64,000 nt of DNA from Mobula hypostoma (lineage: Eukaryota), in the NCBI RefSeq assembly GCF_963921235.1, contig NC_086109.1:1984001-2048000 (forward strand). The letters are read 5' to 3'. Under the pieces are notes generated by a model. That model was given only the letters and a program-made list of their open reading frames with translations, was not told the origin of the DNA and ran no database searches. Shown here piece after piece: positions 41,567-63,953 of this stretch; within the stretch, counting starts at the first letter, position 1; every line of letters begins with the position of its first letter. The translations under genes and the position numbers were made by a program.

Positions 41567-41712
41567 TCAATAAACTACTTGCAATACGAGACCCTTCCCC
41601 AGCCCTGGGGTGTGGGGCGAGGGGCCCCAGGATTCTTCACCAAGTCTGAACTGCTGGGTGGGGGTCTCACTGGATTTCCCAGGGGCTCTTTGGTTGATTT
41701 CAATTTCAGGAA
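41567..41712 (-). CDS. Candidate terminal exon of minus-strand cassette A
   Basis: Phase-1 VPEIEINQRAPGK...LQVVY*; inverted homolog of 6898-7103. Confidence 0.35.
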
Positions 41713-42026
41713 CTATCCTCCAGGATGTTAACGGTTAAATGGGGCACGAGAACTGGGAGGATATCCCAGGAAAGGCTGCAGGAAGATCAGTGGAGTAACA
41801 CAGTAACACAGAGCACAGCACGGGTTCAGTAATAAAGCTCAGTCTGGAAGACTGACCAGATCCAGGTCACTGCAGAACCCTCAGGTGTTTAAAGAGACTC
41901 CCCCCTCACCGGGATTGTGGAACAGGGACAGTGATTCCAGTGGGATGCTCCGACGCTCTCCGTCTGTGCCATGGGTGGGCACTGTTCTCCAGGATCTAGC
42001 ACACACTGTTCCGATGGAGAGGGTGT

Positions 42027-42082
42027 CTATGAGCTGTGTTCTCCACCAGGTCGACTGTTCAAAGACACTCCCACTGTTGGAT
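42027..42082 (-). CDS. Putative cytoplasmic exon of cassette A
   Basis: Strong acceptor ctctctgtctcacag, phase 1 DPTVGVSLNSRPGGEHSS*; a downstream gtgagg donor at 41909 is out of phase. Confidence 0.45.
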
Positions 42083-42139
42083 CTGTGAGACAGAGAGTAG
42101 AGGTGAGGAGGCTCCGTCAGTGCCTTTCCTGATCGACAC

Positions 42140-42600
42140 ATACACATCTCCCCTCCTCCTCCCTGCTCCCAAATCTGCTCACCTCCTTCTCCATGCTCCC
42201 TTTGCCCCATCCCTCATCCTCCTTGCTCTTTCTGACCCTCCCCTCCTCTTCCCTGCTCATCAGCCCCTCTCCTCCTCCTCCCTGCACTCACAGCCTCTCC
42301 ACTCTTCCTCCCTGTTCCCACTGCCCCTCCCCTCCTCCTCCCTAATCTCCCAGACCCTCCCCTCCTCTTCCCCATTCCCAAAGCCTCTCCCCTCCTCCCT
42401 GTTCCCACTGCCCCCCCACTCCCCCAGACCCTCCTCTCCTCCTCCCTACTCTCCCAGACCCTCCCCTCCTCCTCCCCATTCCCAAAGCCTCTCCCCTCCT
42501 CCTCCCTGTTCCCACTGCCCCCCCCCACTCCCCCAGACCCTCCCCCCTCCTCCCTACTCTCCCAGACCCTCCCCTCCTCCTCCCCATTCCCAAAGCCCCT
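42140..42600. repeat. C/T-rich low-complexity tandem repeat
   Basis: Repeated ctcccagaccctcccctcctcctccccattcccaaagcc units. Confidence 0.8.
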
Positions 42601-42620
42601 CCCTCACCTCCGCCCCATCA

Positions 42621-42793
42621 TCATATGTATCCTTCTTGATGCCTTTCCCATTGGGGTGGACTTGCATGAGTGACAATGATGCCAGAGTTTACAGAGCAAA
42701 GATGACCCCGGATTATATACAGTACGGCACACGCAATGATCAAACTGAGTATCACAATGGGAATTATAAAACCAGTGTGTGACGATCTGTAAT
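42621..42793 (-). CDS. Second transmembrane exon (TM2) of cassette A, terminal
   Basis: ccag|ATTAC; DYRSSHTG-FIIPIVILSLIIACAVLYII-RGHLC...EGYI*; paralog of TM1. Confidence 0.6.
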
Positions 42794-42840
42794 CTGGCAC
42801 TGGTTGTGTGTGGGCGGGGGGGGGGGGGGGAGACAATTAC

Positions 42841-42993
42841 CATCAGATGTTCCGGATTTCTTTCCCATACATTTGTCCCAGTGTGAGCGAAGATACGCCC
42901 TCTTTCTATATATACAGCAACACACAAGTAACAGAATGAGTATCACAACGACGGGAATGATCCAAGCAGTGGGTGACGATCTGACACCAGGAT
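42841..42993 (-). CDS. First transmembrane exon (TM1) of cassette A (153 bp, phase 1-1)
   Basis: ttttctcctccccag acceptor, GATG|gtaatt donor; DPGVRSSPT-AWIIPVVVILILLLVCCCIY-RKRAYLRSHWDKCMGKKSGTSD. Confidence 0.75.
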
Positions 42994-43384
42994 CTGGGGA
43001 GGAGAAAAGATTCTGTGATTAATCCCATCCTCATACACCCAGTGACAAGGAATCGATGGATCCACTCCCTCTCACCACAGGCCAGATAAAACTCCCCATC
43101 ATGAAGGGGGAGGGGGATGGAGAGAAAGGATTACAGAATTAATCCCATTCCCACACTCCCAGTTCCAATCATCCTCACATCACTCCCCTTAAATCACAGC
43201 CAACAATGTCACCAACTGTATCTCCACTGATGTTAAACAAGTTCCTTCACACTGTCACTTGGTAACCACACTCCCACAGTGCCCTGTATCGCTGACTGTA
43301 TCTCAATTGATGTTAATCCAACTCCCTCACACCTTCCCACAGAAACCCCTCTCCATCACCCTGTATCCCTGACTCTATCCCCAA

Positions 43385-44190
43385 TTAAAGTTCAAAGTAC
43401 AAAGTACAGTTTATCAAAATGTGCATACATTATAGAACCTCCAGATTCATCTCCTGACAGGCAGCCACGAGACAAAGAAACACAAAAACAAACACACCGA
43501 TATGAAAAAAGACCGTCGAATACTCAATGTGCAATAGAAACAATCCATCATGTAAACAGTAACTGCAAGCCAGTCGTGTTTCTGAACTGAGGTCTGCAAG
43601 AGAGTCCCATACTTTAGTGTAGAGCCATGTAAACATTGTGGAGCAGCGATCTTAATCAGCCCGAACCTCACCTCGGTCCCCGTCACCCAGACCTTTCTGA
43701 CACCCTGATGTTTCCAATCTGGCTCGGAGCGTAACTCTCCATCCCAACATCTGAGGTTGCCCAAGCCTTGCCTCAGGCCTCAACAACCTGACCTTTTCTA
43801 CCACTTCAATTCTCCTGCAAATCTCCATCCAAAGATCATGCTTAGTTGTGTCTGGTGCCTGACCCCGTGGCATTGATTCGATCTGTAAATCTCCGTCCGT
43901 AGATTGTGCTCAGTCACGTCTGGTGCCTTGACCATGCAGTTTCGATTCCGCCTGTGCCTGATCTTTCTTGATTTCCCACGCTGTCGGCAACGGGTCCGCC
44001 GCCTCGCCTCGCCTCACCTCCCCCACCTCGCCTCGGCTCCGCCGCCTCGCCTCCGCCACCTCGCCTCGTCTCGGATCCGCCACATCGAATGGCCTCAGCT
44101 CCGCCACCTCGCCTCGCCTCGGTTCTGCCACATCGAATTGCCTCCAACCCCGAAGGAAAATTACAGACTATTGTTATGATTGTTTGCCAG
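43385..44190 (-). mobile_element. Rex1-type LINE 3-prime end with a (GCCTC)n tract
   Basis: Minus strand PSGLE start near 44150, pentamer repeats at 43990-44130, (aaagtac) tail near 43400. Confidence 0.5.
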
Positions 44191-44723
44191 AAGTTTGGTT
44201 AACAAAGTATTTAGTTGCTGTCCTTGTTTCATTAACTGCCAGCCAGAGATCACAGAGGTTCAGCAGCACCATCTTAACCGGAAGGAGTTACGAGTAAAAC
44301 ACAGATCCTTGTTCATTCTGCACTGTCCCACACACTCCTGAGATCGGACACAGAGAGGAGCTGTCTTGTTGAGCTGGGAGTATGGGAGGAGAAGTCAAAA
44401 AGAACAGCTGAAGGCAACACTGGAAAATGGGTGAGAGGAAATTTTGAGGGTTAATGAAAATGTATGACCACTGAATGTTCTGGTAAAAGGGAACAGAAAA
44501 TGTTGAAAAGATAAAAGGGAGTGTGGAAAACCACAAGTATTATTAAAACATAACAGCAAGATGCTGAGCTCATTGCTAACCACCCTCCTCCAGCTGCAGG
44601 GCTTGTTGTGAAAAGGTACTTCCATTCAGTCTCACAAATGCTTGGATTACATCTACTTACATTATCAGGAAACCTTGACTTGAAGTCTGTAGCTGTCTGA
44701 AAAGGGAGAATTATGAATTATAT

Positions 44724-45695
44724 ACACGTTTCCCCCGCCATCCGAAGGTAGAGCGTTCCTATGAAACGGTTCATAAAGCCGAAATGTCGTGAAGTGAAGA
44801 AGCAATTACCATTGATTTATATGGGAAAATTTTGTGAGCATTCGCAGACCCAAAAATAACCTACCAAATCATGCCAAATAATCACATAAAACCTAAAATA
44901 TCAGTAACATATAGTAAAAGCAGGAATGATATGATAAATACACAGCCTATATAAAGTAGAAATACTTCTCTACAACGATTGCCTGCACAGATCTCCATAG
45001 CGAAAATCTCACGCAAGCGCTGTTGGCATAAACGCGCTCTCCAGTAACCTTTAAACTATGAAGCTGCCAAATCTACCAAATAACACGTAAAAATACACAG
45101 CCTATATAAAGTAGAAATAATGTATGTACAGTCTAGTATCACTTACCGGAATTGGGAAAACAGCGCTGAGCACACTGATGATGGTGTGTTAGACTGAGTT
45201 GTCGCAGGCTGGGTGGTACAGTGGCCCCCACCCTCCGGGCCGCCAACCCGATACATTGCCGCGAAGAATGCAGCAGTAGCCTGGAGGCACACAGCACATC
45301 TTTAAGAAAAAAGCCGAAATAAACATGCTAATTAATTAGGTGCTGCCCGGCACGTAAGTGTCGGCGCAGATCAGAGGCGACTACCGATTGCATCACCTCT
45401 GATCTGGGCCGACAATTACGTGCTAGGCGGCACCTAATTAATTAGCATGTTTATTTCGGCTTTTTTCTTAAAGATGTGCTGTATGCCTCCCGGCTACCGC
45501 TGTGTTCTTCGCAAATCGGTACAGTATCTGTCCGGGGCCCAGATGTTGGGGTGGTGGGACATCTCATCGTCAATCAAGGCAGGCAGCTCACCTTCTCCTA
45601 TGACTGCCCGCTTCAATGTCGAAGGTCGAGGTTCGTCGTCTGCTGTGGCTGATGTGGAAGGCTTGCTTGACTGCTCAGCCTCGCACATTTTTCTA
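44724..45695 (-). mobile_element. Second Tigger-family fragment
   Basis: 44990-45690 aligns with 37640-38345 and carries the opposite terminus. Confidence 0.7.
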
Positions 45696-45696
45696 T

Positions 45697-47140
45697 CATA
45701 CAGTTTTGAATATCTGGGTCCAACTGTTCTTTTGAATTCCCCGACAATATCAATATTTCAGTCCGAATGTTACTTGATATGCCCAGACAATATCGGTGAC
45801 GAGATGGGATCCCTTTAAAAGGGATATGGTGAACCTATGATGGAGAAATTGGCCCCTTGGAAGGGAAATAGGCTGCCCACGAGTTTGCATTGGAAGACGG
45901 GCTTCAAGACCAGGGACCTGGGACGGTGTCAGACAAGGCTGCACATGAGATTGCCCTGAAATAAGGGATTCAAGACTGGGGACCAGGACTGTGTTAGACA
46001 ACGTTGTCCCTTACCGGTGGTGACCAGTGTTCCTGAGTTTGAGTAAGAACAGGACAGAAATTGGGAGAAGGGACAGGGAACACTGAAATTTTAAATTGCA
46101 TTAGAATAAAACTGATCTTTTTTGGACCCAGATGTTCATCGTCATAATCAGCTGATTATACAAGCCAATAGCTGGGGCGTGGGAATATATTAACACCCAT
46201 TAAGTAAGGTTTAAGACTTGAAAAGATGGGTAACCGTCCTGGTAGGTTAGCTGCCCTTTCTAAAAGTAGACCGTCGAGAACAGTGCCTCAGAAGTGATGC
46301 CTGAGTGGTCCTAAAATGAAAATACCAGTAAATGACACCACAATGAAGAAAATTGAAAAGTACAAGAAGACAAAGAAATTGCTGGGTGACCGCTGGTTCC
46401 CCCTGGGATCACCCGCAAATAAGGTTTTGTTGGAAACAGTGGACAGCAGGGACTCGGTTACATTTTCCAGTGATTTGTACGATTGGAATTAGGGGGATTG
46501 GCCTTATGGAGGTTCTTTTGACCAGAAAAAGATAAAATGTTGGAAGGAGACGACTGATTCAGGTAGCGGAGATCCTACATGGTACCTCGATTATGTGATG
46601 TGGTGTTTTAATAAATGGGAACAAGTGGCCAAACAGCACCAACAACCTAAGACAAAACGTAAGAAAGAAACTACTTCTAACAAAAAACCCAGGACACCGA
46701 CGGCCGTGGCTCCAGGACCCGCCAACAGTCTGCACCCACAGTTACCGGCTGCTTCTGCTCCTCCCCCTCCTCCGTGTGATCCACCTCAGGACCTCTCAGG
46801 TCATTGAAGTAGCTGCAACCACCCACCTATTCTGCGTTGCCTATTGTTTGCACACCGAGGGTCCGGAACAGAATGGTTCCCCGAATTAACACCTTTTCGA
46901 AGGCAACAGACAACAAAATCAAAGGGAATAAGAGCTGAGGCAACAGATAGCTCTACTGGGCAGATATCGGTCCATTTCCCCGAACAATGGTGGGAGAAAC
47001 CCCAATTCTAAAGCCCTGGACCTCAGCTGAGGTACGGAATATGGTTTGTGCTGACTCTGACCCGCTAACAAAACCAGTGGCGTTCCATAATTGGTTCACA
47101 CGGTCTTGCCAAATTTTCCAGCCCCCGGCAATCATTTGAT
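45697..47140 (+). mobile_element. Endogenous retrovirus relic (LTR end, PBS, leader, gag MA to CA start)
   Basis: tRNA-Ser(GCU)-like PBS CGGTGACGAG-ATGGGAT at 45794-45810; gag frame from ATG 46226 (MGNRPG...WPYGGSFDQKKI...SLHPQLP..APPPPP) then KPWTSAEVRNM...DP...F...CQIFQP. Confidence 0.6.
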
Positions 47141-48440
47141 ATCTGTCTCTGAAGCTGATGTCAGAACATCTTTGCTGTACCTGGTAGGGCACCCAAAATC
47201 TGTGTCAACCAACAGGTGGGAGTGTCAAGGACATCTTCAATCTCTCACTGCTGTAATCAGAGGTATCCAACCGCTTCAAAAAGGCCTCATTCATACTGGT
47301 GCCCAAGAATAAAAGAGTGAACCGCCTCAACGACCATCACCCACTTTCACTCGCATCTACTCTGGTGAATAGCTTGGAACGGTTAATGATGACTAGAATT
47401 GACTCCTGCCTCAGCAAAGACCTGGTCCTGCTGCAATTTGCCCATAGATGTATAGAAGATGCTATCTCACTGGCTCTCCATTCAGGATTGGACCACCTGG
47501 ACATCAGTGATACCCAAGTCAGGTTGTCTATTGAGTACAGCTCCATCATTCCCTCAGAACTAATCAACAAACTCCAAACCCTGGGCCTCTGCAACCAGAT
47601 CCTGGAGTTCTTCATCAGGAGATCACAGTGAGTGCGGAAAAAAATGATCATCTCCTCTTTGTTCACAAGCAACACTGGTGCACCTCAAAATTGTGTGCTT
47701 AGCCCATTGTTCTACTTTCTCTAACCCTAACTGTAAACCTAACCCATGATTGTGTGGTTGGTAACAACTCAACTGCATTCTAAAATTTCACCAATGATAC
47801 AAATCTCAGACAGTGATGAGGTGGTGTACAGGAGTGGAGTGAGATAGATCAGCTGGTTGAATGGTGTTGTAACAACAACTTTGCAGTCAACGTCAGTAAG
47901 ACCACAGAATTGATCGTGGATTTCAAGAAGGGAAATTCAAGGGAAGACACCCCAGTCGTCATTGAGGGATCAACAATATAAAGGAGTGAGGAGTTTCAAT
48001 TTCCTGGGCATTAACATCTTTGAAGATCTATCCTGGGCCCAACTGTAAATTTCAAAGAGGGCATGTAAGTGGCTCGATTTCATTGGGAGTTTGACAAAAT
48101 TTGGTATGTCACCAAAAACTCAAGCAGGTTTCTACAGATGAACTGTGGAGGGCATGATCAGTTGCATCATTGTCTGAGATGAAGTGTAAAAACATGCAGA
48201 AGAATCTGCTGTGCATTGGAAACTCGGCTAGCTCCATCATGTGCATGAGCCTCCCAAGCAATAACGACATCAAAAGAACCTGCCTCAAAAAGGCAGCGTC
48301 CTTCATTCAGGATCCCAGCCACCCAGCACATGCCCTCATCTCATTACTACCAACAAAGAGGTGGTACAGGAGCCTGAAGACACATACTCAATGTCTTAGG
48401 AACAGCTTTCCCCCCACCTTCAAATTTCTAAACAAATCAT
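47140..48440 (+). mobile_element. Degenerate Rex1-type LINE RT
   Basis: ISVSEADVRTSL, VPKNKRVNRLNDHHP, LQFAH..EDAISLAL, KTTELIVDF. Confidence 0.75.
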
Positions 48441-48444
48441 GAAC

Positions 48445-49640
48445 TCTGAATTTTGCGGATGTGACCAAACACATTGATGAAGGTAGAGCAGTAGGTGTAG
48501 TGTATATGGATTTCAGCGAGGCATTTGATGAGGTACCCTATGCCAGGCTTACTGAGAAAGTAAGGAGGCATGGGATCCAAGGGGACCTTGCTTTGTGGAT
48601 CCAGAATTGGCTTGCCCACAGAAGGCAAAGAGTGGTTGTAGATGGGTTATACTCTGCATGGAGGTCGGTGACCAGTGGTGTGCTTCAGGGATCTGTTCTG
48701 GGACCCCTTCTCTTTGTGATTTTTATAAATGACTTGGATGTGGAGTGGAGGGATGGGTTAGTAAATTTGCTGATATCACAAAGGTTGGGTGTGTTGCGGA
48801 TGGTGTGGAGGGCTATCAGAGGTTACAGCGGGACATCGATAGGATGCAAAACTGGGCTGAGAAGTGGCAGATGGAGTTCAAACCAGAAAAGTGTGAGGTG
48901 GCTCATTTTGCTAGGTCAAATATGATGACAGAATACAGTATTAGTGGTAAGACTCTTGGCAGTGTGGAGGATCAGAGGAATCTTGGGGTCCGAGTACTTA
49001 GGACACTCAAAGCAGCTGCGCAGGTTGACTCTGTGGTTAAGAAAGCATACGGTGTATTGGCCTTCATCAACCATACGATTGAGCTTAAGAGCCAAGAGGT
49101 AATGTTACAGCTTTATAGGTCCATGGTCAGATCCCACTTGAAGTGCTGTGCTCAGTTCTGGTCACCTCCCTACAGGATGTAGAAACTATAGAAAGGGTGC
49201 AGAGGAGATTTACAAGGATGCTGCCTGGATTGGGGAGCTTGCCTTATGAGAATAGGTTGAGTGAACTCGGCCTTTTCTCCTTGGAGTGACGGAAGATGAG
49301 GTGACCTGATAGAGGTGTACAAGATGATGAGAGGCATTGATCGTGTGGATAGTCAAGAAGCTTTTTCCCAGGGCTGAAATGACTAACACGAGAGGACACA
49401 TTTTTAAGGTGCTTGGAAGTAGGTACAGAGAAGTCAGGGGTAAGTATTTTTTAATACAGAGAGTGGTGAGTACGTGGAATGGGCTGCCGGCAATGGTGGT
49501 GGAGGCGGATAATGATAGGGTCTTTTCAGAGACTCCTGGATAGGTACATGGAGCTTAGAAAAATAGAGGGCTATGCTTCTAAAGTAAGTACATATTCGGC
49601 ACAGCATTGGGGGCTGAAGGGCGTGTATTGAGCTGTAGGT
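48445..49640 (+). mobile_element. CR1 RT and 3-prime end
   Basis: [26 protein letters not shown], complete tail. Confidence 0.85.
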
Positions 49641-49659
49641 TTTCTATGTTAACTCATAG

Positions 49660-49880
49660 AGTCAGTCGCCTTTCCAATCACCTCTCAAACACACCCATTA
49701 CTGTCAGTCCCCTTTCCAAACCTCCCACACAAACCCATTATCGTCAGTCCCCTTTCCAATCACCTCTCAGACACACCAATTACCATCAGTTCCCTCTCAC
49801 ACATTCCCATTACTGTCGGTCTCTTTGCAATAACCTCTCACACATGTCCATTAACGTCAGTCCCCTTTCCGAGTATTTCT
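49660..49880. repeat. About 39-bp minisatellite (cacacacccattaccgtcagtcccctttccaatcacctct)
   Basis: Same unit as at 52900-53105 and 57880-58145. Confidence 0.8.
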
Positions 49881-50934
49881 TTTAAGCCCCAGTTCTAGTC
49901 TCTATATCCCTGGTTTATTACAGACTGGGAGCTCTGTACACAGATCTTGTCTTCATATCCCTGTGAGACCATGCTGGGAGCACTGTGCACTGATCTGGTC
50001 TCCATATCTCTGGATTGGACCTCACTGGGAAAACTACACAGTTCTGGCCCATGTAACACTGACAGCACCAAATACGTTTTGATGAGGGATGCAGAGGGAC
50101 CTACTGGGAGCCGCCCAAGGAATTCTAAAAATGGTGAGGTGCCGACCTGGTGAAGCTGTAACACAGGATAAAATGCAAGTTCAACAGCAAAGCCGGAGGA
50201 AACTGAGCTGAGGGATCCCACACCCCACAGATCAGATCAAAGCTCCACAGTCCCCTTACATCAGGTCATGGACGACAGCTGATGGGAGGTGGAGTCTCTA
50301 TAAACATCCCCTCCTTCACTGACGGTGCGACCCAGCGTGTGAGTGCCAGAGATAAGGCTGATCATTCACATCCATGTTCAGACAGAAGTGCTGAGTGGAT
50401 GATCTCCCTCAGCTTCCTCCTGAGATCCCCCATCACAGAAACCAGTCTCCAGACAATTCAGTTCATTCCCTGTGATATCAGATTACTGGATACAGCAACA
50501 ACTATGGGACCAGACTACACCCAGGTGTGGTACTGCAGACCTGTGCTACAGAACTAGGTGGATCTCTGTCCCAGGATCAAACCCCTCTGTGGATCAGGGT
50601 GATGCAAACATGATTCATTTGAGAGGTGTCCATTCTTTAGAGTTCCATCGACAATGGCAATTATCTTATCGTCTGGGGGAATTTCAGCTCCACCACTGGG
50701 GTACACAGTGGCCGCTGTGTGTACCTGTCAATGTCACTGCAGATACTCAGACAGGCTACTCCAACAAACCCTCCCAAACTCTCCACCTCTACCCCCAAGA
50801 ATGAATGTCTTGGACACGGACAATCAGGCAGTGGGGTTCAGTAAAGAGTGGAATGGCCAGGATCTCCCGTCACCCATTAATTAGGATGTTTCAGGAACTG
50901 GTAAAACCCAGGCCCCTCGCCGTGTCTCACTCAC

Positions 50935-51237
50935 CGTTCACTTCCAGTCGCACTCTCGCCTTAAGTTCAGCTCCAGAACCCACAGCAATTTCCACCTCAT
51001 AATCACCGGCATCCTCTCTCTGTAGATCACGGATTTCCAGACTGAAGTCCCCGGGATGAAGAGTTATCCGTTGCTTGTACTCCTCAGTACCGAAGTAGGA
51101 AATGGTGCCATTTGTGTATTCTGCTATTCTGGTTCCGTTTGATCTCCACACCACCTGATAAACATCCCGCCAAGGTGTAATCCCAGCACGTAAGGAGACT
51201 GTCTGTCCCAAAGCTCCTTTCACAATCCCCATCCAGT
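50935..51237 (-). CDS. Ig V-set exon A, CD2/SLAM/CEACAM-like, no canonical cysteines (303 bp, phase 1-1)
   Basis: ctcttgtctcctcag acceptor, AACG|gtgagt donor; VKGALGQTVSL...VVWRS...FSLEIRDLQREDAGDYEV. Confidence 0.85.
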
Positions 51238-52138
51238 CTGAGGAGACAAGAGGAGGCAGTCAGCAGGTGAGCTTAGAGACTGGAGCAGGAATCAGAGTGA
51301 GGTGGGTTCTGAATGAGGGCACAGTTTCAAAATAAGGGACCACCACTTCAGACAGAGATGATCCCCTCGCCAAAGGTCTGGAATCAATGCAATTTTCTCC
51401 CAAAAAGAGCTGTGGAGGCTGAGTCCCTGTGTTCAGGACTGAGACAGAGTTTTGATGTGGAAAGGAGTTGGGGAAGGCGTGGGAACAGGCAGGAAAGCAG
51501 AGCTAAGATCAAGATCAGCCCAACCCTGATCTCAGTGAGCAGGAAGCAGGGTTGTGAGCCTTTAAGGCCTCTAACTGTTCTTTGGATAGAAATGTAGACG
51601 GGAAGGTTAGCATGTTTGTAGATGAGATAAAGATTGGTGGTGTTGTGCATTGTAGAGAGAAGTGCCAATAGGTGCAATTGGATATGGCTCAGATGCAGAC
51701 AATAGCAGGGAAATGTGGCTGCATATTGATAGGGTGGTAAAATAAGGTACTGGCTTAGTTGAGGCAATGAGTTCATAAGTTAGGAAGTTATACTGTATCC
51801 TTAAAATCCCCAGTTTGGAGATCTGAAGTATTGCTTTCTGTTCCAGTCATTTCATTATATGAAGAATGTGAAGGCTTTGGAGAGGGAGCAGACATTTCTT
51901 TTTGGGAGAAAATTGCATTGATTCCAGACCTTTGGCGAGGGGATCATCTCTGTCTGAAATGGTGGTCTCTTATTTTGAAACTGTGCCCTCATTCAGAACC
52001 CACCTCACTCTGATTCCTGCTCCAGTCTCTAAGCTCACCTACTGACTGCCCCCTCTTGTCTCGTCAGACTGGATGGGGACTGTGAAAGGAGCTTCGGGAC
52101 AGACAGTCTCCTAACGTGCTGGGATCACACCTTGGCGG
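51167..52138. repeat. 241-bp inverted repeat (51167-51407 / 51898-52138)
   Basis: Arms are reverse complements with about 10 mismatches counted by eye; they cover the V-A acceptor and first 71 exon bases. Confidence 0.9.
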
Positions 52139-52899
52139 TGAGTGCCTAGATTAAAGAGCACGTGCTATAAGGAATTTCTGGACAAACTTGGAATGTTTCC
52201 TCTGAGTGTCAGAGGTTAAAGATAGACCTGACATAAGTTTATAAATTTTGAAGGACACAGACAAAGTAGTTAGCCTGTATTTTTCTCCAGGGTCAAAAAT
52301 GTTGGACAAACTTAGGTTATTTCCTCTGGAGTGGCAGAAGCTAAGGGAAGATCTGATAGAGGTTTATCAGATTATGCGAGGCATAGATAGAGTAGACAGA
52401 CAGGGTTGGAATGTTTAATAGCAGAATACATGCATTTAAGATGACAGGGGCTAAGTTGGAAGGAGATGTGAAGCAAGTATTTTTACACAGAGGGTGGGTG
52501 GTGGGTGCCTGGAACATGCTGCCCGTGATGGTGGTAGTGGAGGCGTTTAGATAGGCACACAAACATGCTGGAAATGGAAGCGTATGGACAATGTGTAAGC
52601 ACAAGGGATTAGTTTAGTTGGGCATTTGATTACTAATTTAGTTAGTTAGGCATAACATTATGGGACAAAGGGCCTGTCCCTGCGCTGTATGTTTGATGTT
52701 CTAAAATGTCTTGGACGACAAGGCAACAAGGTAACTGAAGGCCAGGAGCAACTGGTTGAGGGTGGTGGGCATGATGAATGAACAAGGGCTGTGGATGAGA
52801 GCTTGGTTTAAAATAGGCTGCAAGTGAAGAATTGGGAACCAGTGTCAGGTGATTCCTGTTAGCTGGGTGGAGACAGGAAGGTGATGCCTGCTGCCTCTC

Positions 52900-53105
52900 A
52901 CACACACCCATTACTGTCAGTTTCCTTCCGAAACCTCTCACACACGCCCATTACCGTCAGTTCCCTTCCGAAACCTCTCACACACGCCCATTACCATCAG
53001 TTCCCTTCCGAAACCTCTCACACACACCCATTAACATCAGTCCCCTTCCGAAACCTCTCACACACAACCATTAACATCAGTCCCCTTTCTAATCACCTCT
53101 CACAC
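52900..53105. repeat. About 39-bp minisatellite, second array
   Basis: cacacgcccattaccgtcagttcccttccgaaacctctca units. Confidence 0.8.
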
Positions 53106-53234
53106 CCCAAATTCTGGTCTCCATATCCCTGGATTGGACCTCACTGGGAGCACCATGCACAGTTCTGGTCTCCGCAACAATAAGAGCACCAAGCACGTTT
53201 TCATAAGGGGTGCAGACGAAGCTATTGGGACCAG

Positions 53235-53323
53235 AACCACCTTAGAAACATCCAGTCTGGCTGAGATCCCACCAGGCAAAGAGACCATATGTCCCTAAAC
53301 TCCTTTCGCAGTCTCCACCCAGT
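53235..53323 (-). pseudogene. Truncated V exon B
   Basis: Intact acceptor, then DWVETAKGV*GHMVSLPGGISARLDVSKVV fused to a CR1 fragment. Confidence 0.75.
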
Positions 53324-54156
53324 CTGTGGAGACAAGAGGAGGCAGTCAGCAGGTGAGCTCAGTGACTGGAGGAATCAAGAGTGAGGTGGGTTCTGGGAAG
53401 GTGTTCATCTTTGTGTGCAGTGTAGAACAAGGCACAGTTTCAGAATAAAGCACCATTTCAGACAGAGATGAGGAATGATGTCTCCTCTCCAAGGGTCAGG
53501 AATCTCCCCATTTTTTTCCCCCAGAGAGCAGTGGAGTCACTGTATTCAAGGCTGAGAGAGATCTGATCAGGAGGAGTCGCTTAGGGCGTGGGAACAAGCT
53601 GGAAAGTGGAGCCCAGTTCAAGGTCAAACCAGCCCTGATCTCAGTGAATGGATTTTAGGATTCAGGAGCCGAAGGACAGAAATGTAGATCGGAGGGTTAG
53701 CACATTTGTAGATGAGATAAAGATTGGTGGTGTTGTGGATGGTGCAGGGGAGTGCCAATATGTGCAACTGGACATGGATCAGATGCAGACATGGGTGGGG
53801 AAACGTGGCTGCATGTTGATCAGGGGGGTAAAGAAGGGACTTTACATGCTTGCCCTGATCAGTCGAGGCACTGAGTTCAAAAGTCAGGAACTTATGCTAC
53901 ATCTTTTAAATTCTGGTTTGGCCACATCCAAGGTATTGCATTCACTTCCAGCCACCCAATTAAAGGAAGGATGGAAGGATGGGGAGGCTTTGGAGAGGGT
54001 ACAGACATTTACCATGATACTACGTAGATTATAGGGCAGGTGCTGGAAGAAAAACAATTGGACAGATTTGGGTTGTTTCCTCTGAGTGTCTGAGGTTGAG
54101 GATAGACCTGATACAAGTTTATAACATTTTTAAGAACACAGATAAAGTAGAAGCTA

Positions 54157-54497
54157 CACACATAAAAGTTGCTGGTGAACGCAGCAGGCCAGGCATCATC
54201 TCTAGGAAGAGGTGCAGTCGACGATTCAGGCCGAGACCCTTCGTCAGGACTAACTGAAGGAAGAGTGAGTAAGGGATTTGAAAGTTGGAGGGGGATCAAT
54301 TTTGGATCTCCCCCTCCCCCTCCAACTTTCAAATCCCTTACTCACTCTTCCTTCAGTTAGTCCTGACGAAGGGTCTCGGCCTGAATCGTCGACTGCACCT
54401 CTTCCTGGAGATGCTGCCTGGCCTGCTGCGTTCACCAGCAACTTTTATGTGTGTTGCTTGAATTTCCAGCATCTGCAGAATTCCTGTTGTTTGCGTT
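54157..54497. mobile_element. Palindromic Penelope-like insertion
   Basis: About 139-bp inverted arms (54156-54294 / 54316-54454) and a 14-bp TSD TAAAGTAGAAGCTA at 54143-54156 and 54498-54511. Confidence 0.85.
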
Positions 54498-54555
54498 TAA
54501 AGTAGAAGCTAATCACTTCCAACTGGTACTGTAAAGCCAGGATTTTTCCGCCCAA

Positions 54556-54830
54556 GGGTTGTACTATAGCGTAGTGGTTAGCACAACGCTTTACAGTACC
54601 AGTGAACCAGGTTGAATTCCCGCTGCCCATAAGGAGTTTGTACATTCTCCCCGTGTCCACGTGGGATTCCTCTGTGTGCTGTGGTTTCCTCCCACAGTCC
54701 AAACACGTACCGATTGGATGGTTAATCGGTCATTATAAATTGTCCTGTGATTAGGTTTGGGTTAAATTGGGGTATTCCTGGGCTGCACGGCTCAAATGGT
54801 TGCAAGGGCCTGTTCCCTGCTCTATCTTGA
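54556..54830 (+). mobile_element. tRNA-derived SINE (HE1/V-SINE-like)
   Basis: A box TAGCGTAGTGG, B box GGTTGAATTCC, core ttctccccgtg...gtttcctcccacagtccaaa. Confidence 0.75.
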
Positions 54831-55625
54831 TAAAATGTTTAAAAAATCAAATAAAAAGTGTCTAATACCAGAGATGGTGCACCTACAGTGACAGGGGTAA
54901 ATTCAAAGGAGATGTGCAGGGCAAGTTTTTCTTCACACAGAGTGGGGGTGGGAGCCTGAAATGGGCTGCCGGGAGTGGTGGTAGAGGCAAAGGCCAGAGA
55001 GATTTTTGAGAGGCTGTCACATACACACATGAATGTCTAGAGAATAAAGGCATATGGAGCACGAACAGTCAGAAGGGATTAGCTTAACTGGGTTCCATTA
55101 GCAATGAGTTTGGCAGCACGTCATGAGCTGAGGAGCTGTTCCTGTGATGTTCCATTCCTCACGTTCTGACATTCTCCTCCCTCCAATGGGACCCGTTAAA
55201 CCTGGGGTGGAGGAGATTTCTCAGACAGACGTTGCTGAGTGAGATTATTGTGAATGTGATATTACTGTTTGAGTGAGTCAGGAACCATATTGCTGTGTGT
55301 GAGTGTGCTGTTGTGTCCGTGTACTGTGTCACTCACTGGGACATTATATTCAGTGTAATGAACACACAGGGTCTCACTCAGCACAGCACAGCATGAAGGC
55401 TGAGGAATAAACACCTTGCTGAGCTCAGACCTCAGTCTGGGGAATTAACAAGCAGTGCCTCTGAAAATGGGATCCCTGAACATGACAGACCAGGACTTTG
55501 ACCTGGGGATACAGAGGGATCTGTTTAACTGACCCACAGATATAGACTGTTCAGCCCAGTCATCAGCCTCTCCCACCAGATTGGCCTATCTCCCATTCCC
55601 CCTTCCCCATCTGCTCAGCTCCTCC

Positions 55626-56492
55626 GCAGATCGCTTGCGGGCCGAATGTCGGAGACTGCAGCTGTTAGAAGAGCTGTTCAGACCGCCCAATGTCGGGAGG
55701 ACGGGGGCAGTACCAGCCACTATCTGCCAACTCACCGATTTTGGAGTCACGCTGACGGCTGAGATCTCCTGGGGTATGAACCAACGAGAGGTGAATGTTT
55801 TATTTTGGACTCTGGAGCAGCAGAAAATTTCCTGGACTTGGGCATAGCCCATCGGCTCAGCGTACAGCTGCTTGTGTTGAGTCAGCCCATGATCGCAACT
55901 GTCTTGGATGACAGCCGCTTCGTTCCGGGCAGATCCGGCAGATCGGCAGCAGACTTGCAGATGGTCTTGCGGATGAAGATAGCGGATCATGCGGAGGACA
56001 TTAGTTTCTCTATCATTGAGATCTCTAGTTCAGGAGCAAACAATGAGTTGCCCAAGCAGTATGGAACTCTATCGGTTAAGCCAAAGGCCTCCAGTTGCCA
56101 GGTCCCGTCTAAGGGGAAGGCTTCAAAACGGAGACCCTTGGAGCCCAGTCCCAGGAGCGCAAGGACCATTTGTCGCGCCTCGCTGCCGATGTCTGAGGAG
56201 ATGGAAGAGGATTTAGAAGGTGCTTTGGCCGCTATTTTCACTAGAGACTTGTGAACCTATGGGTGAAACCCTGGGGTCTGGCAAATCACCCTCAAAGAGT
56301 CTCAGGAGTCACCTTCGGAGGAAGGTTCGAGGGTAATTGCAGCTCCCAAACTGGCAGAAATCCCTTTGGGCTACAAGGATTTGGCAGAGGTCTTCATTAA
56401 GGGAAAGGCCTCAATTCTTCCACTGCTGCCAGCCTACCACTGTGCTACAGATCTACTGCCTGGTACTTGTCCTTCGCGGGGCCGATTATCTC
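55626..56492 (+). mobile_element. sushi-type Gypsy fragment (protease and PR-RT linker)
   Basis: LDSGAAENF protease motif; YKDLAEVF..KA..LP...YHCATDLLPG. Confidence 0.75.
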
Positions 56493-56597
56493 TCCCCTCC
56501 CCTCCTCCTCCCAGCGCTCACAGCCTCTCCCTCCCTGCTCCCTCAGCCCCTCCTCCCTCTCCATTCCCACTGCCCCTTCCCTCCTCCTCCCTATCAC

Positions 56598-56726
56598 CAT
56601 ATGTATCCCTTCTTGATGCCTTTCCGCAGATTATACGGTGAAGATGTATATACAGCACAAGGCACACAACGATCAGACTGAGTGTCACAACGGCAATTGT
56701 ACAGCCAGTGTGTGACAATACGTAAT
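56598..56726 (-). CDS. TM2 exon of cassette C (129 bp, phase 1-1)
   Basis: DYVLSHTG-CTIAVVTLSLIVVCLVLYI-HLHRIICGKASRRDTY; donor ATATG|gtgata. Confidence 0.6.
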
Positions 56727-56756
56727 CTGTTTCTGGGGGTGTGGGGAGACACCGAC

Positions 56757-56895
56757 CGTCAGATGTACACGTTCCGGAATTCTTTCCCTTGTATTTGTCC
56801 CAGCTTTTGCGAATATAGAATATATAGGAAAGGGAACACACTGAGTATCCCGATGGCAATCATCCAAAGCTTGGGTGATGATTTCTGATCTGGAT
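56757..56895 (-). pseudogene. TM1 exon of cassette C, frameshifted (139 bp)
   Basis: ctcctcctcag acceptor; DPDQKSSPKLWMIAIGILSVFPFLYILYSQK...NVYI*, while the family frame (RKSWDKYKGKNSGTCTSD) lies in another frame; donor gtcggt. Confidence 0.6.
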
Positions 56896-57879
56896 CTGAG
56901 GAGGAGAAACGATTCTGTGATTAATCCCATCCTCATACACCCAGTGACAAGGAATCGATGGATCCACTCCCTCTCACCACAGGCCAGATAAAACTCCCCA
57001 TCATGAAGGGGGAGGGGGATGGAGAGAAAGGATTACAGAATTAATCCCATTCCCACACTCCCAGTTCCAATCATCCTCACATCACTCCCCTTAAATCACT
57101 GCCAACAATGTCACCAACTGTATCTCCACTGATGTTAAACAAGTTCCTTCACACTGTCACTTGGTAACCACACTCCCACAGTGCCCTGTATCGCTGACTG
57201 TATCTCAATTGATGTTAATCCAACTCCCTCACAGCTTCCCACAGAAACCCCTCTCCATCACCCTGTATCCCTGACTCTATCCCCAATTAAAGTTCAAAGT
57301 ACAAAGTACAGTTTATCAAAATGTGCATACATTATAGAACCTCCAGATTCATCTCCTGACAGGCAGCCACGAGACAAAGAAACACAAAAACAAACACACC
57401 GATATGAAAAAAGACCGTCGAATACTCAATGTGCAATAGAAACAATCCATCATGTAAACAGTAACTGCAAGCCAGTCGTGTTTCTGAACTGAGGTCTGCA
57501 AGAGAGTCCCATACTTTAGTGTAGAGCCATGTAAACATTGTGGAGCAGCGATCTTAATCAGCCCGAACCTCACCTCGGTCCCCGTCACCCAGACCTTTCT
57601 GACACCCTGACGTTTCCAATCTGGGTCAGCACGTAACTCTCCACCCCAACATCGGGTTCTGCCGCTTTGAGCAGCGATCTGAGGCAGCCCAAGCCTTGCC
57701 TCGGGCCTCAAGAACCTGACCTTTTCTATCTGGCCCAGTGCTTAAATTTCCATCCGAACAACAGGTTCTGCCTCTTGGATACGCTGGACTTCACCACTTT
57801 GATTCGACCTGTAAATCATCCATCCATAGATCGTCTGCAGTCACATCTGGCGCCTGGACCGGTGGCTTCAATTCGGCCC

Positions 57880-58145
57880 GTAACTCTCTGTCCAATTACC
57901 TTTCACACACACACATTACCGTCAGTCCCCTTTCCAATCACCACTCTCACACACACCCATTACCGTCAGTCCCCTTTCCAATCACCACTCTCACACACAC
58001 CCATTACCGTCAGTCCCCTTTCCAATTACCTCTCACACACACTCATTACCGTCAGTCCCCTTTCCAATTACCTCTCACACACACTCATTACCGTCAGTTC
58101 CCTTTCCAAACCTCTCTCACACACCTATTACCTTCAGTCCCCTTT
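57880..58145. repeat. About 39-bp minisatellite, third array
   Basis: cacacacacccattaccgtcagtcccctttccaatcaccact units. Confidence 0.8.
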
Positions 58146-59024
58146 CTGACTATTTCACACACTCCCAAATCCAAATCCTTGGATTAGACCACACTGGGAG
58201 CACCAGGATCAGTTCTGGGCCCAGTAACACTGAGGGCACCAAACACATTTTGATGAGGGTTTCAGAAGGACCTTCTGGGAGCAGAACCAGCAGAACCTCA
58301 AAATGGTGAGCTGCCAGCTGCTGAAGCTGTAACACAGGGTGACATGTGAGGGATTAGCTTAACTGGGTTCCATTAGCAATGAGTTCTCCTCCCTCCAATG
58401 GAACCCGTTAAACCTGGGGTGGAGGAGATTTCTCAGACAAACGTTGCTGAGTGAGATTATTGTGAATGTTATATTACTGTTAGAGTGAGTCAGGAACCAT
58501 ATTACTGTGTGTGAGTGTACTGTTGTGTCCGTGTACTGTTGTGTCCGTGTACTGTGTCACTCACTGGGACACTATATTCAGTGTAATGAATACACAGGGT
58601 CTCACTCAGCACAGCACAGCATGAAGGCTGAGGAATAAACACCTTGCTGAGCTCAGACCTCAGGCTCGGGAATTAACAAGCAGTGCCTTCTGAAAATGAG
58701 TTCCCTGAACATGACAGACCAGGCCTTTGACCTGGGGATACAGAGGGATCTGTTTAACTGACCCACAGATATAGACTGTTCAGCCCATCCGCCAACCCCT
58801 CCCACACCTTTGGCCTATCTCCCAATCCCCCACACCATCTGCTCATCTCCAAACAACCCTCCCAAACTCTCCACCTCAAACCCCAAGAATGAATGTCTTG
58901 GACATGGACAATCAGTCAGTGGGGTTCAGTAAGGAGTGGAATGGCCAGGATCTGCCGTCTACCATTAATTGGGGGTGTTTCAGGAACTGGTGAAACCCAG
59001 GCCCCTCTGCAGTGTCTCACTCCC

Positions 59025-59327
59025 CATACACTTCCAGTCGCATTTTATTCTGACTCTGTCCTCCTGAACTTGATGTAACAGTCACCTCATAATCACCAGC
59101 ATCCTCTCTCCGTAGATCACGGATTTCCAGACTGAAGTTTCCGGGATGAAAAGTCATCCGTCGCTTATACTCCTCAGGACCAAAGAAGGAAATGTTTCCA
59201 TTTGCATATTCTACTATTGTGGTTCCTTTTGATCTCCACACCACCTGGGAAATGTTCAGCAAAAGTGTGATCTCAGCAGGTAGATAGACCAACCATCCCT
59301 GAGCTCCTTTCACGGTTCCCATCCATT
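59025..59327 (-). CDS. Ig V-set exon C with mutated splice donor (303 bp)
   Basis: Open paralog of V-A (VVWRSKG...FSLEIRDLRREDAGDYEV); the donor reads GGGAGT where V-A has GTGAGT. Confidence 0.75.
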
Positions 59328-60049
59328 CTGAGGAGACAAGAGGAGGCAGTCAGCAAGTGAGTTCAGTGACTGGAGCAGGAATCAGAGTGAGGTGGGTGCT
59401 GGGAGGGTGTTTCCCCCTACTGAGGGATCTAGAACAAGGGCACATTTTCAGAATAAGGGACTATAATTTTAGATGGAGATGAGGAGCGTTTTCCCTTCTC
59501 CAATGGTTGGTATTCTCTGGAGCTTTCTCCCCCAGAGAGCTGTGGAGGCTGAGTCAGTGTATTCAAGGCTGAGATAGAGTTTTGATCTAGAGAGGTGTCG
59601 GGGAGAGGGTGGAAACAGGCAGGAAAGTGGAGCTTAGATCAAGGTCAGACCAACCCTGATTTTAGTGAGAGGGGAGAGGGCTTGAGGGGGGCAAAAGCCT
59701 TCAAACCGTTCCTTGGAGAGAAATACAGATGGGAGGGTTAGGATGATTGTAGATGAGATAAAGATTGTTGGTGTGGATGGTGCAGAGGAGTGCCAATAGA
59801 TGCAATTGGACATGGATCAGATGCAGATGTGGGTGGGGAAACGTGGCTCGATGTTGATTGGGTGGTAAAGAAGGGACTTTACATGTTTGCTCTCATCACT
59901 CGAAGCACTGAGTTCAAATGTCAGGAAGTTATGCTACATCTTTAAAAACTCTGATTCACCCACATCTGGAGTACTGCATTGAATTCCAGCCACCCTGTTA
60001 AAGGAAGAATGTGGAAGCTTTGGAGAGGGAACAGACATTTACCATCTGG

Positions 60050-61195
60050 GTGCATGTTTCCACACGGTAGGCTTATTCAGAAGGTCAGAAGGCATGGGAT
60101 CCAGGGAAGTTTAGCCAGGTGGATTCAGAATTGGCTTGCCTGCTGAAGGCAGAGGGTCATGGTGGAGGGAGTACATTTGGATCGGAGGGTTGTGAGTACT
60201 GGTGTCCCACAAGGATCGGTTCTGGGACCTCTACTTTCTGTGATTTTTATTAACGACCTAGGTGTGGGGGTAGAAGGGTGTGTTGGCAAGTTTTCAGACG
60301 ACGCAAAGGTTGGTGGTGTTGTAGATAGTGTAGAGGATTGTCGAAGATTCCAGAGAGACATTGATAAGATGCAGAAGTGGGCTGCAAAGTGGCAGATGGA
60401 GTTTAACCCGGAGACGTGTGAGGTGGTACACTTTGGAAGGACAAACTCCAAGGCAGAATACAAAGTAAATGGTAGGATACTTGGTAGTCTGGAGGAGCAG
60501 AGGGATCTGGGGATACATGTCCACAGATCCCTGAAAGTTGCCTCAGAGGTGGATAGGGTAGTTAAGAAAGCTTATGGGGTGTTAGCTTTCATAAGTTGAG
60601 GGATAGAGTTTAAGAGTCACGATATAATGATGCAGATCTATAAAACTCTGGTTAGGCCACCTTTGGAGTACTGTGCCCAGTTCTGGTCGCCTCACTATAA
60701 GAAGGATGTGGAAGCATTGGAAAGGGTACAGAGGAGATTTACCAGGATGCTGCCTGGTTTAAAGAGTATGGATTATGATCAGAAATTAAGGAAGCTAGGG
60801 CTTTACTCTTTGGAGAGAAGGAGGATAAGAGGAGACATGATAGAGGTATACAAGATATTAAGAGGAATAGATATAGTGGATAGCCAGTGCCTCTACCCCA
60901 AGGCACCACTGCTCAATACAAGAGGACATGGCTTTAAGGTAAGGGGTGGGAAGTTCAAGGGGGATATTAGAGGAAGGTTTTTTACTCAGAGAGTGGTTGG
61001 TGCGTGGAATGCACTGCCTGAGTCAGTGGTGGAGGCAGATACACTAGTGAAATTTAAGAGGCTACTAGACAGGTATATGGAGGAATTTAAGGTGGGGGGG
61101 GGTTATATGGGAGGCAGGGTTTGAGGGTCAGCACAACATTGTGGGCCGAAGGGCCTGTAATGTGCTGTAATATTCTTTGTTCTATGTTCTATTAC
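60050..61195 (+). mobile_element. 5-prime-truncated CR1 inserted upstream of V-C
   Basis: PQGSVLG, KFSDD, LVRPPLEY, full tail; absent from the paralogous intron near 54010. Confidence 0.88.
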
Positions 61196-61329
61196 AGGGC
61201 ACGTGCTGGAAGAAAAGTTTGGACAGATATGGGTTGTTCCCTCTGAGTTTCGGAGGTTGATAATAGACCTGATACAAGTTTATAACATTTTTAATGATAC
61301 AGAAGTAGACAGAAAGTAATTTTTTCCCA

Positions 61330-61620
61330 GGCGTGGCATGATAGCTTAGTGTTTAACACAACGCTTTACAGTACCAGTGAACCAGATTGAATTCCCGCTG
61401 CTCGTAAGGAGTTTGTACATTCTTCCTGTGACCACGTGGGATTCCTCTGCGTGCTCTGGCTTCCTCCCACAGTCCAAAGACGTACCGATTGGATGGTTAA
61501 TTAGTCATTATAAATTGTCCAGTGATTAGGCTGGGGTTAAATTGGGGTAATGCTGGGCTGCACTGCTCAAAGGCCTTCAAGGGCCTCTTCCTTGTTGTAT
61601 CTTGACAAAATTTTAAAAAT
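61330..61620 (+). mobile_element. tRNA-derived SINE, paralogous to 54556-54830
   Basis: Same head and core at the equivalent intron position. Confidence 0.7.
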
Positions 61621-62139
61621 CATTTAAAAAGTGTCTAATACCAGAGATGGTGCATTTACAGTGACAGGGGTAAATTCAGAGGAGATGTGCGGGGCAAGTT
61701 TTTCTTTACACACAGAGTGATGGGAGCCTGAAATGGGCTGTCGAGAGTGGTGCTACAGGCAAAGGTTTCGAGGGTGTGAACACAATGAGGGAATGCGGGG
61801 AAACACCGTCTACACTGTCCCTTCATCCACTCCCAGTGCACAGGTCATGTACAGAATGAAGCTCGTCCACACTATCCTTCTGCAGAGGTCAACCCTGGCA
61901 CTGGTCCTCTCGGATGACCCTGACAACTGGTTCTTCACAGTGACGTTATTGGATTAAGGTCTACAATTCTTGTTTTTTAATTGCCCTTTTCCTTGTTGAT
62001 TTAGCTTTCTTTTTGAGTTTATGTTTGAATTATCACCTGTTTGCTAACTTTTAGTAAATGCAGTATCGTGGGTTCTCGCTTCCTGTGGGGGGAGAGGAAG
62101 GAGAACTGGCTCGAAGATGGTGGGTGGGGAAAGGTAAAG

Positions 62140-62340
62140 ATGAGAAAATCTGCAGATGCTGGAAATCTGAGCAACACACACAAAATGCTGGAGGAACTCA
62201 GCAGACCAGGCAGCATCTATGGAAAAGAGTGGACAGTTGACATTGCAGGCTGAGACCCTTCATCAGAGAAAGGAAAGGGGCTGGAGAAGAAGGTATCTGA
62301 TAGGAGAGAACAGAGGGTAATGGGAGAAAGGGAAGAGGAG
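62140..62340 (-). mobile_element. Penelope-like tail with degenerate hammerhead
   Basis: Minus strand CTGATGAagggtctcagcctGCAA. Confidence 0.6.
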
Positions 62341-62584
62341 GGGCATTTATTTTTCAATGGGACATCATTGTGTTTTGAGTCTATGCCCTGTGGTCGAAGA
62401 CACCTCACCCTGCCCATATGAAACATCCTCTCCAAGTCCATTGGTTTAAGTCTTTCAATATTCAGAATCAGAATCAGGTTTATTATCACTGGCATGGGTC
62501 GTGAAATTTGTTAATTTTGAGGTAGCAGGACAATGCGATGCATGATGACAGAGAGAAAGAAACTGAATTGCAGTAAATATACGT

Positions 62585-63953
62585 ATCGAATGTATAATTT
62601 TCTAATCATTGGGACCTTGTTTTGGGGAGGTGTGACCTGTACAAAAAGGATGGGTTGCACTTGAATCCCAGGGGGACCAATATCCTGGTGGGGAGGTTTG
62701 CTAAGGCTGCTGGGAGGAGTTCAAACTAGAATTGTTGGGGAGTGGGAACCGAACTAAAGAGACTGGGGAAGAGACGGTTGGCTCACAAATAGAGAAAGCT
62801 TGCAGACAGTGTGTGAGGGAGGATTGGCAGGTGATAGAGAAGGGACACCCTCAGACCGACGGTTTCAGATGTGTCTATTTCAACGTAAGGAGTATTGTGA
62901 ACAAAGCGGATGAGCTTCGAGCATGGATCAGTACTTGGAGATATGAAGTTGTGGCCATTACAGAGACTTGGATGGCTCAGGGACAGGAATGACTACTTCA
63001 AGTGCCAGGTTTTAGATGTTTCAGAAAGGACAGGAAGGGAGGCAAAAGAATTGGGGGCATAGCACTGTTGATCAGAGATCGTGTCACGGCTGCAGAAAAT
63101 GTGGACGCCATGGAGGGATTGTCTACGGAGTCTCTGTGGAACAGAGACCCTGAGAACAGAGGTTAGGAACAGGAAGGGGTCAATAACTTTACTGGGTGTT
63201 TCTTATAGGTTGCCCAATAGTAACAGGGATATTGAGGAACAGATGAGGAAACAGATCCTGGAAAGGTGCAATAATAACAGATTTGTCTTGATGGGAGATT
63301 TTAATTTCCCAAATATTGATTGACATTTCCCCAGAGCAAGGAGTTTAGATGGGAGAGAGTTTGTTAGGTGTGTTCAGGAAGGTTTCTTGACACAATATGT
63401 AGATTAGCCTACAAAAGAGACTGTACTTGATTTGGTATTGGGAAATGAACCTGGTCAGGTGTCAGGTCTCTCAGTGGGAGAGCATTTTGGAGATAGTGAT
63501 CATAATTCTATTTCCTTTACAATAGCATTGGAGAGGCATAGGAACAGACAACTCAGAAAAGCATTTAATTGGACTATGGCGAATTATGAGGCTATCAGGC
63601 AGGAAATTAGAAGCTTAAATTGGAAACAGATGTTCTCAGGGAAAAGGACAGAACAAATGTGGCAAATACTCAGCGGATATTTGTGTGGAGTTCTGCACAG
63701 GTAGGTTCCAATGAGACAGGGAAATTATGGTAGGGTACAGGAACCATGGTGTACAAAGGCTGCAATAAATCTAGTCAAGAGGAAAAGCTTGCAAAAGTTT
63801 CAGAGAGCGAAGTAATGTTGGAGATCTAGAAGATTATAAAGCTAACAGGAAGGAGGTTAAGAAGGAAATTAGGACAGCCAGAAGGGGCCATGAGAAGGCA
63901 TTGGTGAGCAGGATTAAGGAAAACCCCAAGATACTCTGCAAGTATGTGAAGAG
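62585..63953 (+). mobile_element. CR1 ORF1 end and endonuclease region
   Basis: DGLHLN, YFNVRSIVNKADELRAW..ETW, GDFNFPNID, SDHNSISF. Confidence 0.85.

Follow-up and report, generated by a model that had tools for sequence, protein, structure and literature searches.

We analysed a 64,000-nucleotide stretch of the Mobula hypostoma genome (contig NC_086109.1; hereafter the window), in which the region at 42-59 kb contains exons for disulfide-less immunoglobulin (Ig) V-type domains and for transmembrane (TM) segments. An earlier note, made from the sequence alone, had described these as an array of receptor cassettes, each with a single V domain and its own TM exon. We consider it probable, at roughly 80%, that the region is instead the 3′ half of one gene, LOC134355363, a member of a CD2/SLAM subfamily of the Myliobatiformes with chained disulfide-less V domains and no C2 domain. 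All V, TM and tail exons at 42-59 kb lie on the minus strand, a point absent from the earlier note, and the plus strand of both V intervals is rich in stop codons. The M. hypostoma RefSeq gene LOC134355363, which is already annotated, matches the window sequence exactly; it spans 54.4 kb, of which about 32 kb, including the leader and V1-V3, lies past the window's end. Isoform X1 of this gene (P0186, XP_062921208) is 579 amino acids (aa) long and comprises a leader, V1, V2, V3, a V domain truncated after ...REDA, a full V domain, a TM segment and a tail, and a comparison of its peptides with the window gives five V exons in one gene. Four pieces of X1 fall in the window, where they are the consecutive exons V-C, V-A, TM1-A and tail:

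59325..59098, minus strand, X1 piece from V-C (part of the exon), exact peptide match
51235..50936, minus strand, X1 piece from V-A, exact peptide match
42991..42842, minus strand, X1 piece from TM1-A, exact peptide match
42080..42030, then TAG, minus strand, X1 piece from the tail exon, exact peptide match

In isoform X2 (P0160), a cryptic donor in V-C is joined straight to TM1-A and V-A is skipped. Isoform X3 (P0185) ends in TGWGL and a stop, which is what the V-A exon gives over its initial 18 bases when translated out of frame, so that in X3 as well V-C is spliced to the acceptor of V-A. All three RefSeq models splice V-C to V-A or TM1-A, and none contains TM-C, the TM-type sequence that follows V-C. 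The cassettes proposed previously also have no leaders of their own. A profile of the family's leader exons gave a best E of 1.7 near V-A and V-C, and a generic scan for an ATG, a hydrophobic core and a phase-1 GT[AG] donor returned zero candidates in 51238-56760 and 59328-64000.

An exhaustive HMMER search with V-A retrieved ray and shark proteins at an identity of 50-64%, in which V stretches number one to three, and a further search added the Mobula proteins; the ray relatives bear NCBI names such as 'Ly-9-like' and 'SLAM family member 5/8/9-like'. When 70 V domains were placed in a maximum-likelihood tree, with domain positions from the RefSeq models of other species, V-A falls in a clade composed solely of the last-position V domains of three-V proteins (support 100/96), with members from M. 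hypostoma, M. birostris, Hemitrygon akajei and Hypanus sabinus. V-C falls in the clade of second-position V domains (support 95/88), and the first-position V domains form a separate clade (support 99/97). By position, V-A thus corresponds as an ortholog to the third V of the three-V proteins of four ray species and V-C to the second, a grouping that goes against the single-V proposal. As this positional orthology extends across genera, leader-V1-V2-V3-TM is a gene plan of long standing that stingrays and devil rays have conserved; in the ancestral layout, which has no C2 domain, each V would be one 303-bp exon of phase 1-1. The earlier suggestion of a lineage-specific family is right.

The same leader-V1-V2-V3-TM layout, with the same type of TM and tail, is found in the three-V proteins of M. 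hypostoma (LOC134355365, LOC134355364 and LOC134355361), and the layout recurs in M. birostris (XP_072135121-128) and in the 'Ly-9-like' proteins of Hemitrygon akajei and Hypanus sabinus. The V-A protein sequence is 100% identical to V3 of LOC134355365 and 98% identical to a M. birostris V3; TM1-A and the TM of P0162 share 96% identity, and for the tail exon a 78% match is found in the P0001 tail. Positional orthology of V2 and V3 and the shared TM and tail type place LOC134355363 in the ray three-V SLAM-like subfamily. Compared with its three-V paralogues, LOC134355363 differs in having five V exons, by duplication of V1 and V2, and in carrying the damaged internal elements V-C, V-B and TM-C. 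The absent leaders, the positional orthology and the shared TM and tail together argue for a chain of exons, and these are three lines of sequence evidence outside the M. hypostoma models of this locus. In a M. birostris paralogue (XP_072135122-127, with a V3 96% identical to V-A), isoforms skip V1 (P0187) or V3 (P0166), and in P0189 the V3 donor is read through into a short tail, which would give a soluble form.

The two V exons in the window with open frames are as follows:

50935..51237, minus strand, V-A, intact membrane-proximal V exon of the third-position type, X1 residues 411-510
59025..59327, minus strand, V-C, extra V exon of the second-position type with an open frame and a dead donor

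The V-A exon is 303 bp long and of phase 1-1, with an open frame, an AG acceptor at 51239-51238 and a GTGAGT donor at 50934; it consists of two bases finishing a split codon, 100 codons (WMGIVKG...RLEVN) and one extra base, after which GTGAGT begins. The V-C exon is also 303 bp long, has an AG acceptor and an open frame, and is collinear with V-A. Its donor has been lost: 59024-59023 reads GG (G/GGGAGT, the slash marking the exon end) where V-A reads G/GTGAGT. Because of this mutation, the 1-1 phase of V-C is assigned by homology only. Two cryptic donors lie within V-C. The first, G/GTGATT between 59097 and 59096, is of phase 1, accounts for the truncated V-C in X1 and is the donor joined to TM1-A in X2, and the second, GAG/GTGACT after 59086, is of phase 0 and is used in X3. 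No cysteine is encoded in V-A or V-C; the C-strand Trp and the D-A-G-D-Y motif are retained in each, with W30, D75 and Y79 invariant in 58 relatives. The exact exons thus bear out what had been noted of them (303 bp, phase 1-1, cysteine-free, with Trp and D-x-G-x-Y retained), with the phase of V-C qualified as above.

The earlier comparison with CD2/SLAM domains is likewise upheld. The Pfam V-set model matches V-A and V-C above its gathering score (E 8e-9 and 5e-9), and the Receptor_2B4 and SLAM models give weak, sub-threshold matches. The nearest sequences with solved structures, by phmmer against the PDB, are those of SLAMF5/CD84 (E 3.4e-5), CD48 (4e-4) and CD2 (3.5e-3), with SLAMF6 also retrieved, and all of these are N-domains. 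An AlphaFold2 model of V-A built on the 58 relatives has a pLDDT (predicted local distance difference test score) of 93. When this model was searched against the PDB with Foldseek, the best matches were the N-terminal V domains of CD48, 2B4, CD84, CD2 and CD58 (template-modelling scores of 0.82-0.89), and against Swiss-Prot the top 16 were all N-domains, of CD48, SLAMF5, Ly-9, SLAMF8, SLAMF9, 2B4, SLAMF7 and CD2; over both databases, the scores of the top matches range from 0.82 to 0.91. On these sequence matches, the AlphaFold2 model and the Foldseek results, the V-A and V-C domains are of CD2/SLAM type. The N-domains of CEACAM and HEPACAM proteins are also V-type, and those of CEACAM disulfide-less, but CEACAM and HEPACAM sequences gave only weak, partial matches to V-A and V-C (CEACAM1 at E of about 0.007-0.1, in non-N-terminal regions), and no CEACAM or HEPACAM N-domain is among the top Foldseek matches of the V-A model.

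The absence of a C2 exon between V and TM, already reported in the earlier note, held in every search made for one. A profile of 13 C2 domains of the family, run unfiltered against the 2068 stop-free segments of the six reading frames of the window, returned nothing better than an E of 0.22. A tblastn search with C2-bearing relatives (P0004, P0006, P0009, P0017 and others) returned no match outside the V and TM exons. Pfam detected no Ig-type domain in the 14 minus-strand open segments of at least 75 aa in the two V-to-TM introns, and the matching RefSeq protein P0186 contains no C2 domain. A C2 exon, and with it the membrane-proximal C2 domain characteristic of the CD2/SLAM family, is therefore absent from the window; close relatives in the same species (P0153 and P0173) do have a C2 domain. 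One candidate Ig exon, at 43961-44263 (tblastn E 0.01), was rejected as a GC-rich minisatellite read as RRGEVAE repeats. The 2.1 kb between V-C and TM-C had been attributed to intron paralogy, a minisatellite and relics of long interspersed nuclear elements (LINEs). The first two are present, the minisatellite having a 42-bp period, but the relics with reverse-transcriptase (RVT_1) sequence lie elsewhere:

57891..58146, unstranded, 42-bp minisatellite in the V-C to TM-C interval, with paralogous copies at 52894-53105 and 49661-49866
48461..49182, plus strand, LINE reverse-transcriptase relic (RVT_1) in the 7.9-kb intron between V-A and TM1-A
60159..61124, plus strand, LINE reverse-transcriptase relic upstream of V-C, with RVT_1 at 60159-60599

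Downstream of V-A, the following TM and tail exons were identified:

42841..42993, minus strand, TM1-A, encoding stalk, TM helix and juxtamembrane region, 153 nt, phase 1-1, exact match to X1
42693..42793, minus strand, TM2-A, a second TM-type open exon, absent from all RefSeq models
42027..42082, minus strand, tail exon, encoding (D)PTVGVSLNSRPGGEHSS and then a stop, with an AG acceptor, exact match to X1 and X2

TM1-A has an AG acceptor and a GTAATT donor, and its splice sites and those of the tail exon are canonical and of compatible phases. The nearest AATAAA on the minus strand lies about 1.1 kb beyond the stop codon. No charged residue is present in the TM helix, AWIIPVVVILILLLVCCCIY, and the cytoplasmic tail, RKRAYLRSHWDKCMGKKSGTSDDPTVGVSLNSRPGGEHSS, has a single Tyr, in RAYLRS. 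The modelled LOC134355363 tail contains neither an immunoreceptor tyrosine-based switch motif (ITSM, TxYxxV/I), which marks SLAM receptors, nor an immunoreceptor tyrosine-based inhibitory motif (ITIM), in agreement with the earlier description of uncharged TM segments and motif-free tails. Related Mobula SLAM-like genes do have ITSM motifs (TVYANI, TIYANV and TVYAAV). The acceptor of TM2-A is 47 nt past the TM1-A donor (42794-42840 between them), too close for both exons to be spliced in. TM2-A resembles the TM type of LOC134355361 (41%), and the same twin arrangement, decayed, occurs farther upstream beside TM-C. A long C/T-rich tandem repeat (42148-42615, with periods of 30 to 119 bp) takes up the intron that separates the tail exon from the TM exons, and a paralogous copy of the repeat follows TM-C (about 56530-56640).

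Self-comparison of the window resolves three tandem units, C (60040..56530), B (54010..52894) and A (51897..42549), with 42549-43933 paralogous to 56530-57860 at 82% and 50759-51897 to 58847-60040 at 76%. Besides V-C, three damaged elements were found in or between these units:

56757..56895, minus strand, TM-C, decayed TM1 duplicate, unused by any RefSeq model
53236..53323, minus strand, V-B, 5′ remnant of a V exon of the second-position type, starting at 53323 and broken off at about 53236
51897..52138, plus strand, inverted 242-bp copy of the V-A 5′ end and the intron upstream of it, 96% identity, containing a stop codon

TM-C is 139 nt long against 153 in TM1-A, and hence 14 nt shorter; it is frameshifted, with a TGA in frame at 56761-56759. 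The ninth codon of V-B is a TAG (53297-53295), and its homology stops after about 90 bp. The earlier remark that intact, truncated and donor-mutated copies lie side by side is accurate: V-A is intact, V-B is broken off and has the TAG, and V-C has GG for its donor. Cassettes C and B are damaged duplicates inside LOC134355363, and V-B, the inverted fragment and TM-C would be the dead remnants of a tandem-duplicated unit of V and TM. Within the paralogous stretches 50759-51897 and 58847-60040, the exon bodies of V-A and V-C differ at a synonymous divergence (dS) of 0.40 and a nonsynonymous divergence (dN) of 0.23, whereas their flanking introns are less diverged than the exons (8.5-23%; 8.5% downstream and 17% upstream). 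This excess of exon over flank divergence suggests, from the sequence comparison, a mosaic origin of the V-A/V-C duplicates or exon-scale gene conversion. The two arms of the inverted repeat (51167-51408 and 51897-52138, 242 bp, 96%) are about 490 bp apart and flank the region just upstream of the V-A acceptor. Such a repeat could form a hairpin in the pre-mRNA, favouring skipping of V-A as in X2.

Under the one-gene reading, V-A would be the intact membrane-proximal V domain, spliced to TM1-A and then to the short tail exon, and V-C would enter the annotated transcripts only through its cryptic donors, with the domain truncated or the frame shifted. Several points weigh against this reading. 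The chain of exons rests on NCBI automatic models and comparative sequence, and a search with V-A, TM and tail together returned RefSeq models only, with no transcript-derived protein. A truncated or frameshifting V-C is present in three of three annotated isoforms, so that a working protein from the LOC134355363 copy is uncertain, and the gene may be half-dead or the models partly forced. Since V-A is 100% identical to V3 of LOC134355365, it gives no sign of selection on the LOC134355363 copy. Function, cell type and ligand are deduced purely from the family.

An alternative which takes up the damage to V-C is that LOC134355363 is, in its 3′ part, a fusion in decay: an upstream gene that lost TM-C and the V-C donor would read into a downstream remnant (V-B, V-A and TM1-A), with mostly non-productive results. 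This would suit the position of the frameshifted TM-C after V-C, the truncated or frameshifting V-C of every annotated isoform, and the dead, second-position-type V-B directly before V-A, as V2 stands before V3 in the intact paralogues. However, V-A, TM1-A and the tail exon show no damage and have canonical splice sites, complete omission of V-C could leave a product in frame, and the stretch from TM-C to V-B contains no relic of a leader or of V1. We regard a decaying fusion as unlikely.

A second alternative, which strikes us as quite improbable, is that the symmetric V exons are optional cassettes by which the receptor varies its ectodomain on purpose. Every V exon is of phase 1-1, the RefSeq isoforms differ in their V exons (X1 has V-A and X2 skips it), and the isoforms of the M. 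birostris paralogue described above, with V1 or V3 skipped or the V3 donor read through, would fit such a scheme. Skipping of symmetric exons is nevertheless commonplace, the extra copies in the window are damaged rather than alternative, and nothing points to V exons being chosen in a mutually exclusive way.

The original proposal, that each pair of V and TM exons is a separate single-V receptor gene in a tandem array, can claim that the duplicated unit had a V exon together with a TM1/TM2 pair (the DNA paralogy of 82% and 76% given above) and that V-only SLAM-like Mobula proteins exist (P0022, P0023 and P0177, each with leader, V, stalk, TM and ITSM), but it is very improbable, as no leader lies upstream of V-A (over the 5.5 kb to TM-C or the 12.7 kb to the window's end) or of V-C, the V exons begin in phase 1 without a signal peptide and are chained in the RefSeq models, the V2/V3 positional orthology holds in four species, V-C is unable to splice normally and TM-C is frameshifted.

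With the region taken as the 3′ half of LOC134355363, the gene can be compared with the SLAM/CD2 family at large (SLAMF1-9, CD2, CD48 and CD58). The shared features are a disulfide-less V domain, one Ig domain per phase-1 exon, a type I membrane protein and clustered paralogues, LOC134355361-LOC134355367 all being on one 98-Mb scaffold. The canonical SLAM/CD2 arrangement is V-C2, whereas the ray subfamily is without any C2 and the LOC134355363 tail is without an ITSM. Ly-9/SLAMF3 also has more than two Ig domains, but these alternate as V-C2-V-C2, in contrast to the three to five consecutive V domains here. SLAMF8, SLAMF9 and CD48 have a short tail or none and no TxYxxV/I, and are not expected to couple to SAP or EAT-2; the same applies to LOC134355363, for which the lack of a tyrosine motif in the tail would predict no SAP signalling. 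These three proteins differ in that they keep V-C2, and CD48 is anchored by glycosylphosphatidylinositol, while LOC134355363 has a tail of about 40 aa and, in its TM helix, a CCC cluster. By analogy with the family, the protein would be carried on leukocytes as an adhesion or recognition molecule of SLAM/CD2 type, in which the distal V1 would bind and the extra V domains would stand in for C2 as a stalk.

A second multi-V SLAM-like gene reaches into the other end of the window. On the plus strand, the TM exon at 804-989 is 100% identical to that of M. hypostoma LOC134355361 (P0165 residues 327-388), and it is accompanied by a tail-like exon at 4811-4879. To judge from these sequence matches, LOC134355361 ends in the window, tail to tail (convergent) with LOC134355363.

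Read in this way, what had been flagged as 'single-V cassettes' belongs to a multi-V gene, as exons or as relics of exons, and the earlier reading is corrected accordingly. A SLAM/CD2 architecture of disulfide-less V domains in a chain, lacking both C2 and ITSM, is present in the automatic annotation of four ray species, and no description of an all-V, C2-less architecture was found in the searchable literature on SLAM/CD2 in cartilaginous fish, where slamf is placed on the elasmobranch MHC (major histocompatibility complex) chromosome as a map label (PMC10751288). We would put forward, as a tentative possibility, that stingrays and devil rays have a SLAM/CD2 subfamily in which C2 has been replaced by extra V domains of SLAM type, which lacks tyrosine motifs, undergoes fast duplication of exons and genes, gene conversion and decay, and varies the length of its ectodomain by skipping of symmetric V exons. 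The finding opens no long-standing question. It is relevant to the changes of domain plan that leukocyte adhesion and co-receptor families underwent in cartilaginous fish, and, if true, the all-V pattern would be consistent with a pathogen-driven or self-recognition arms race acting on a family that stays rigid in mammals.

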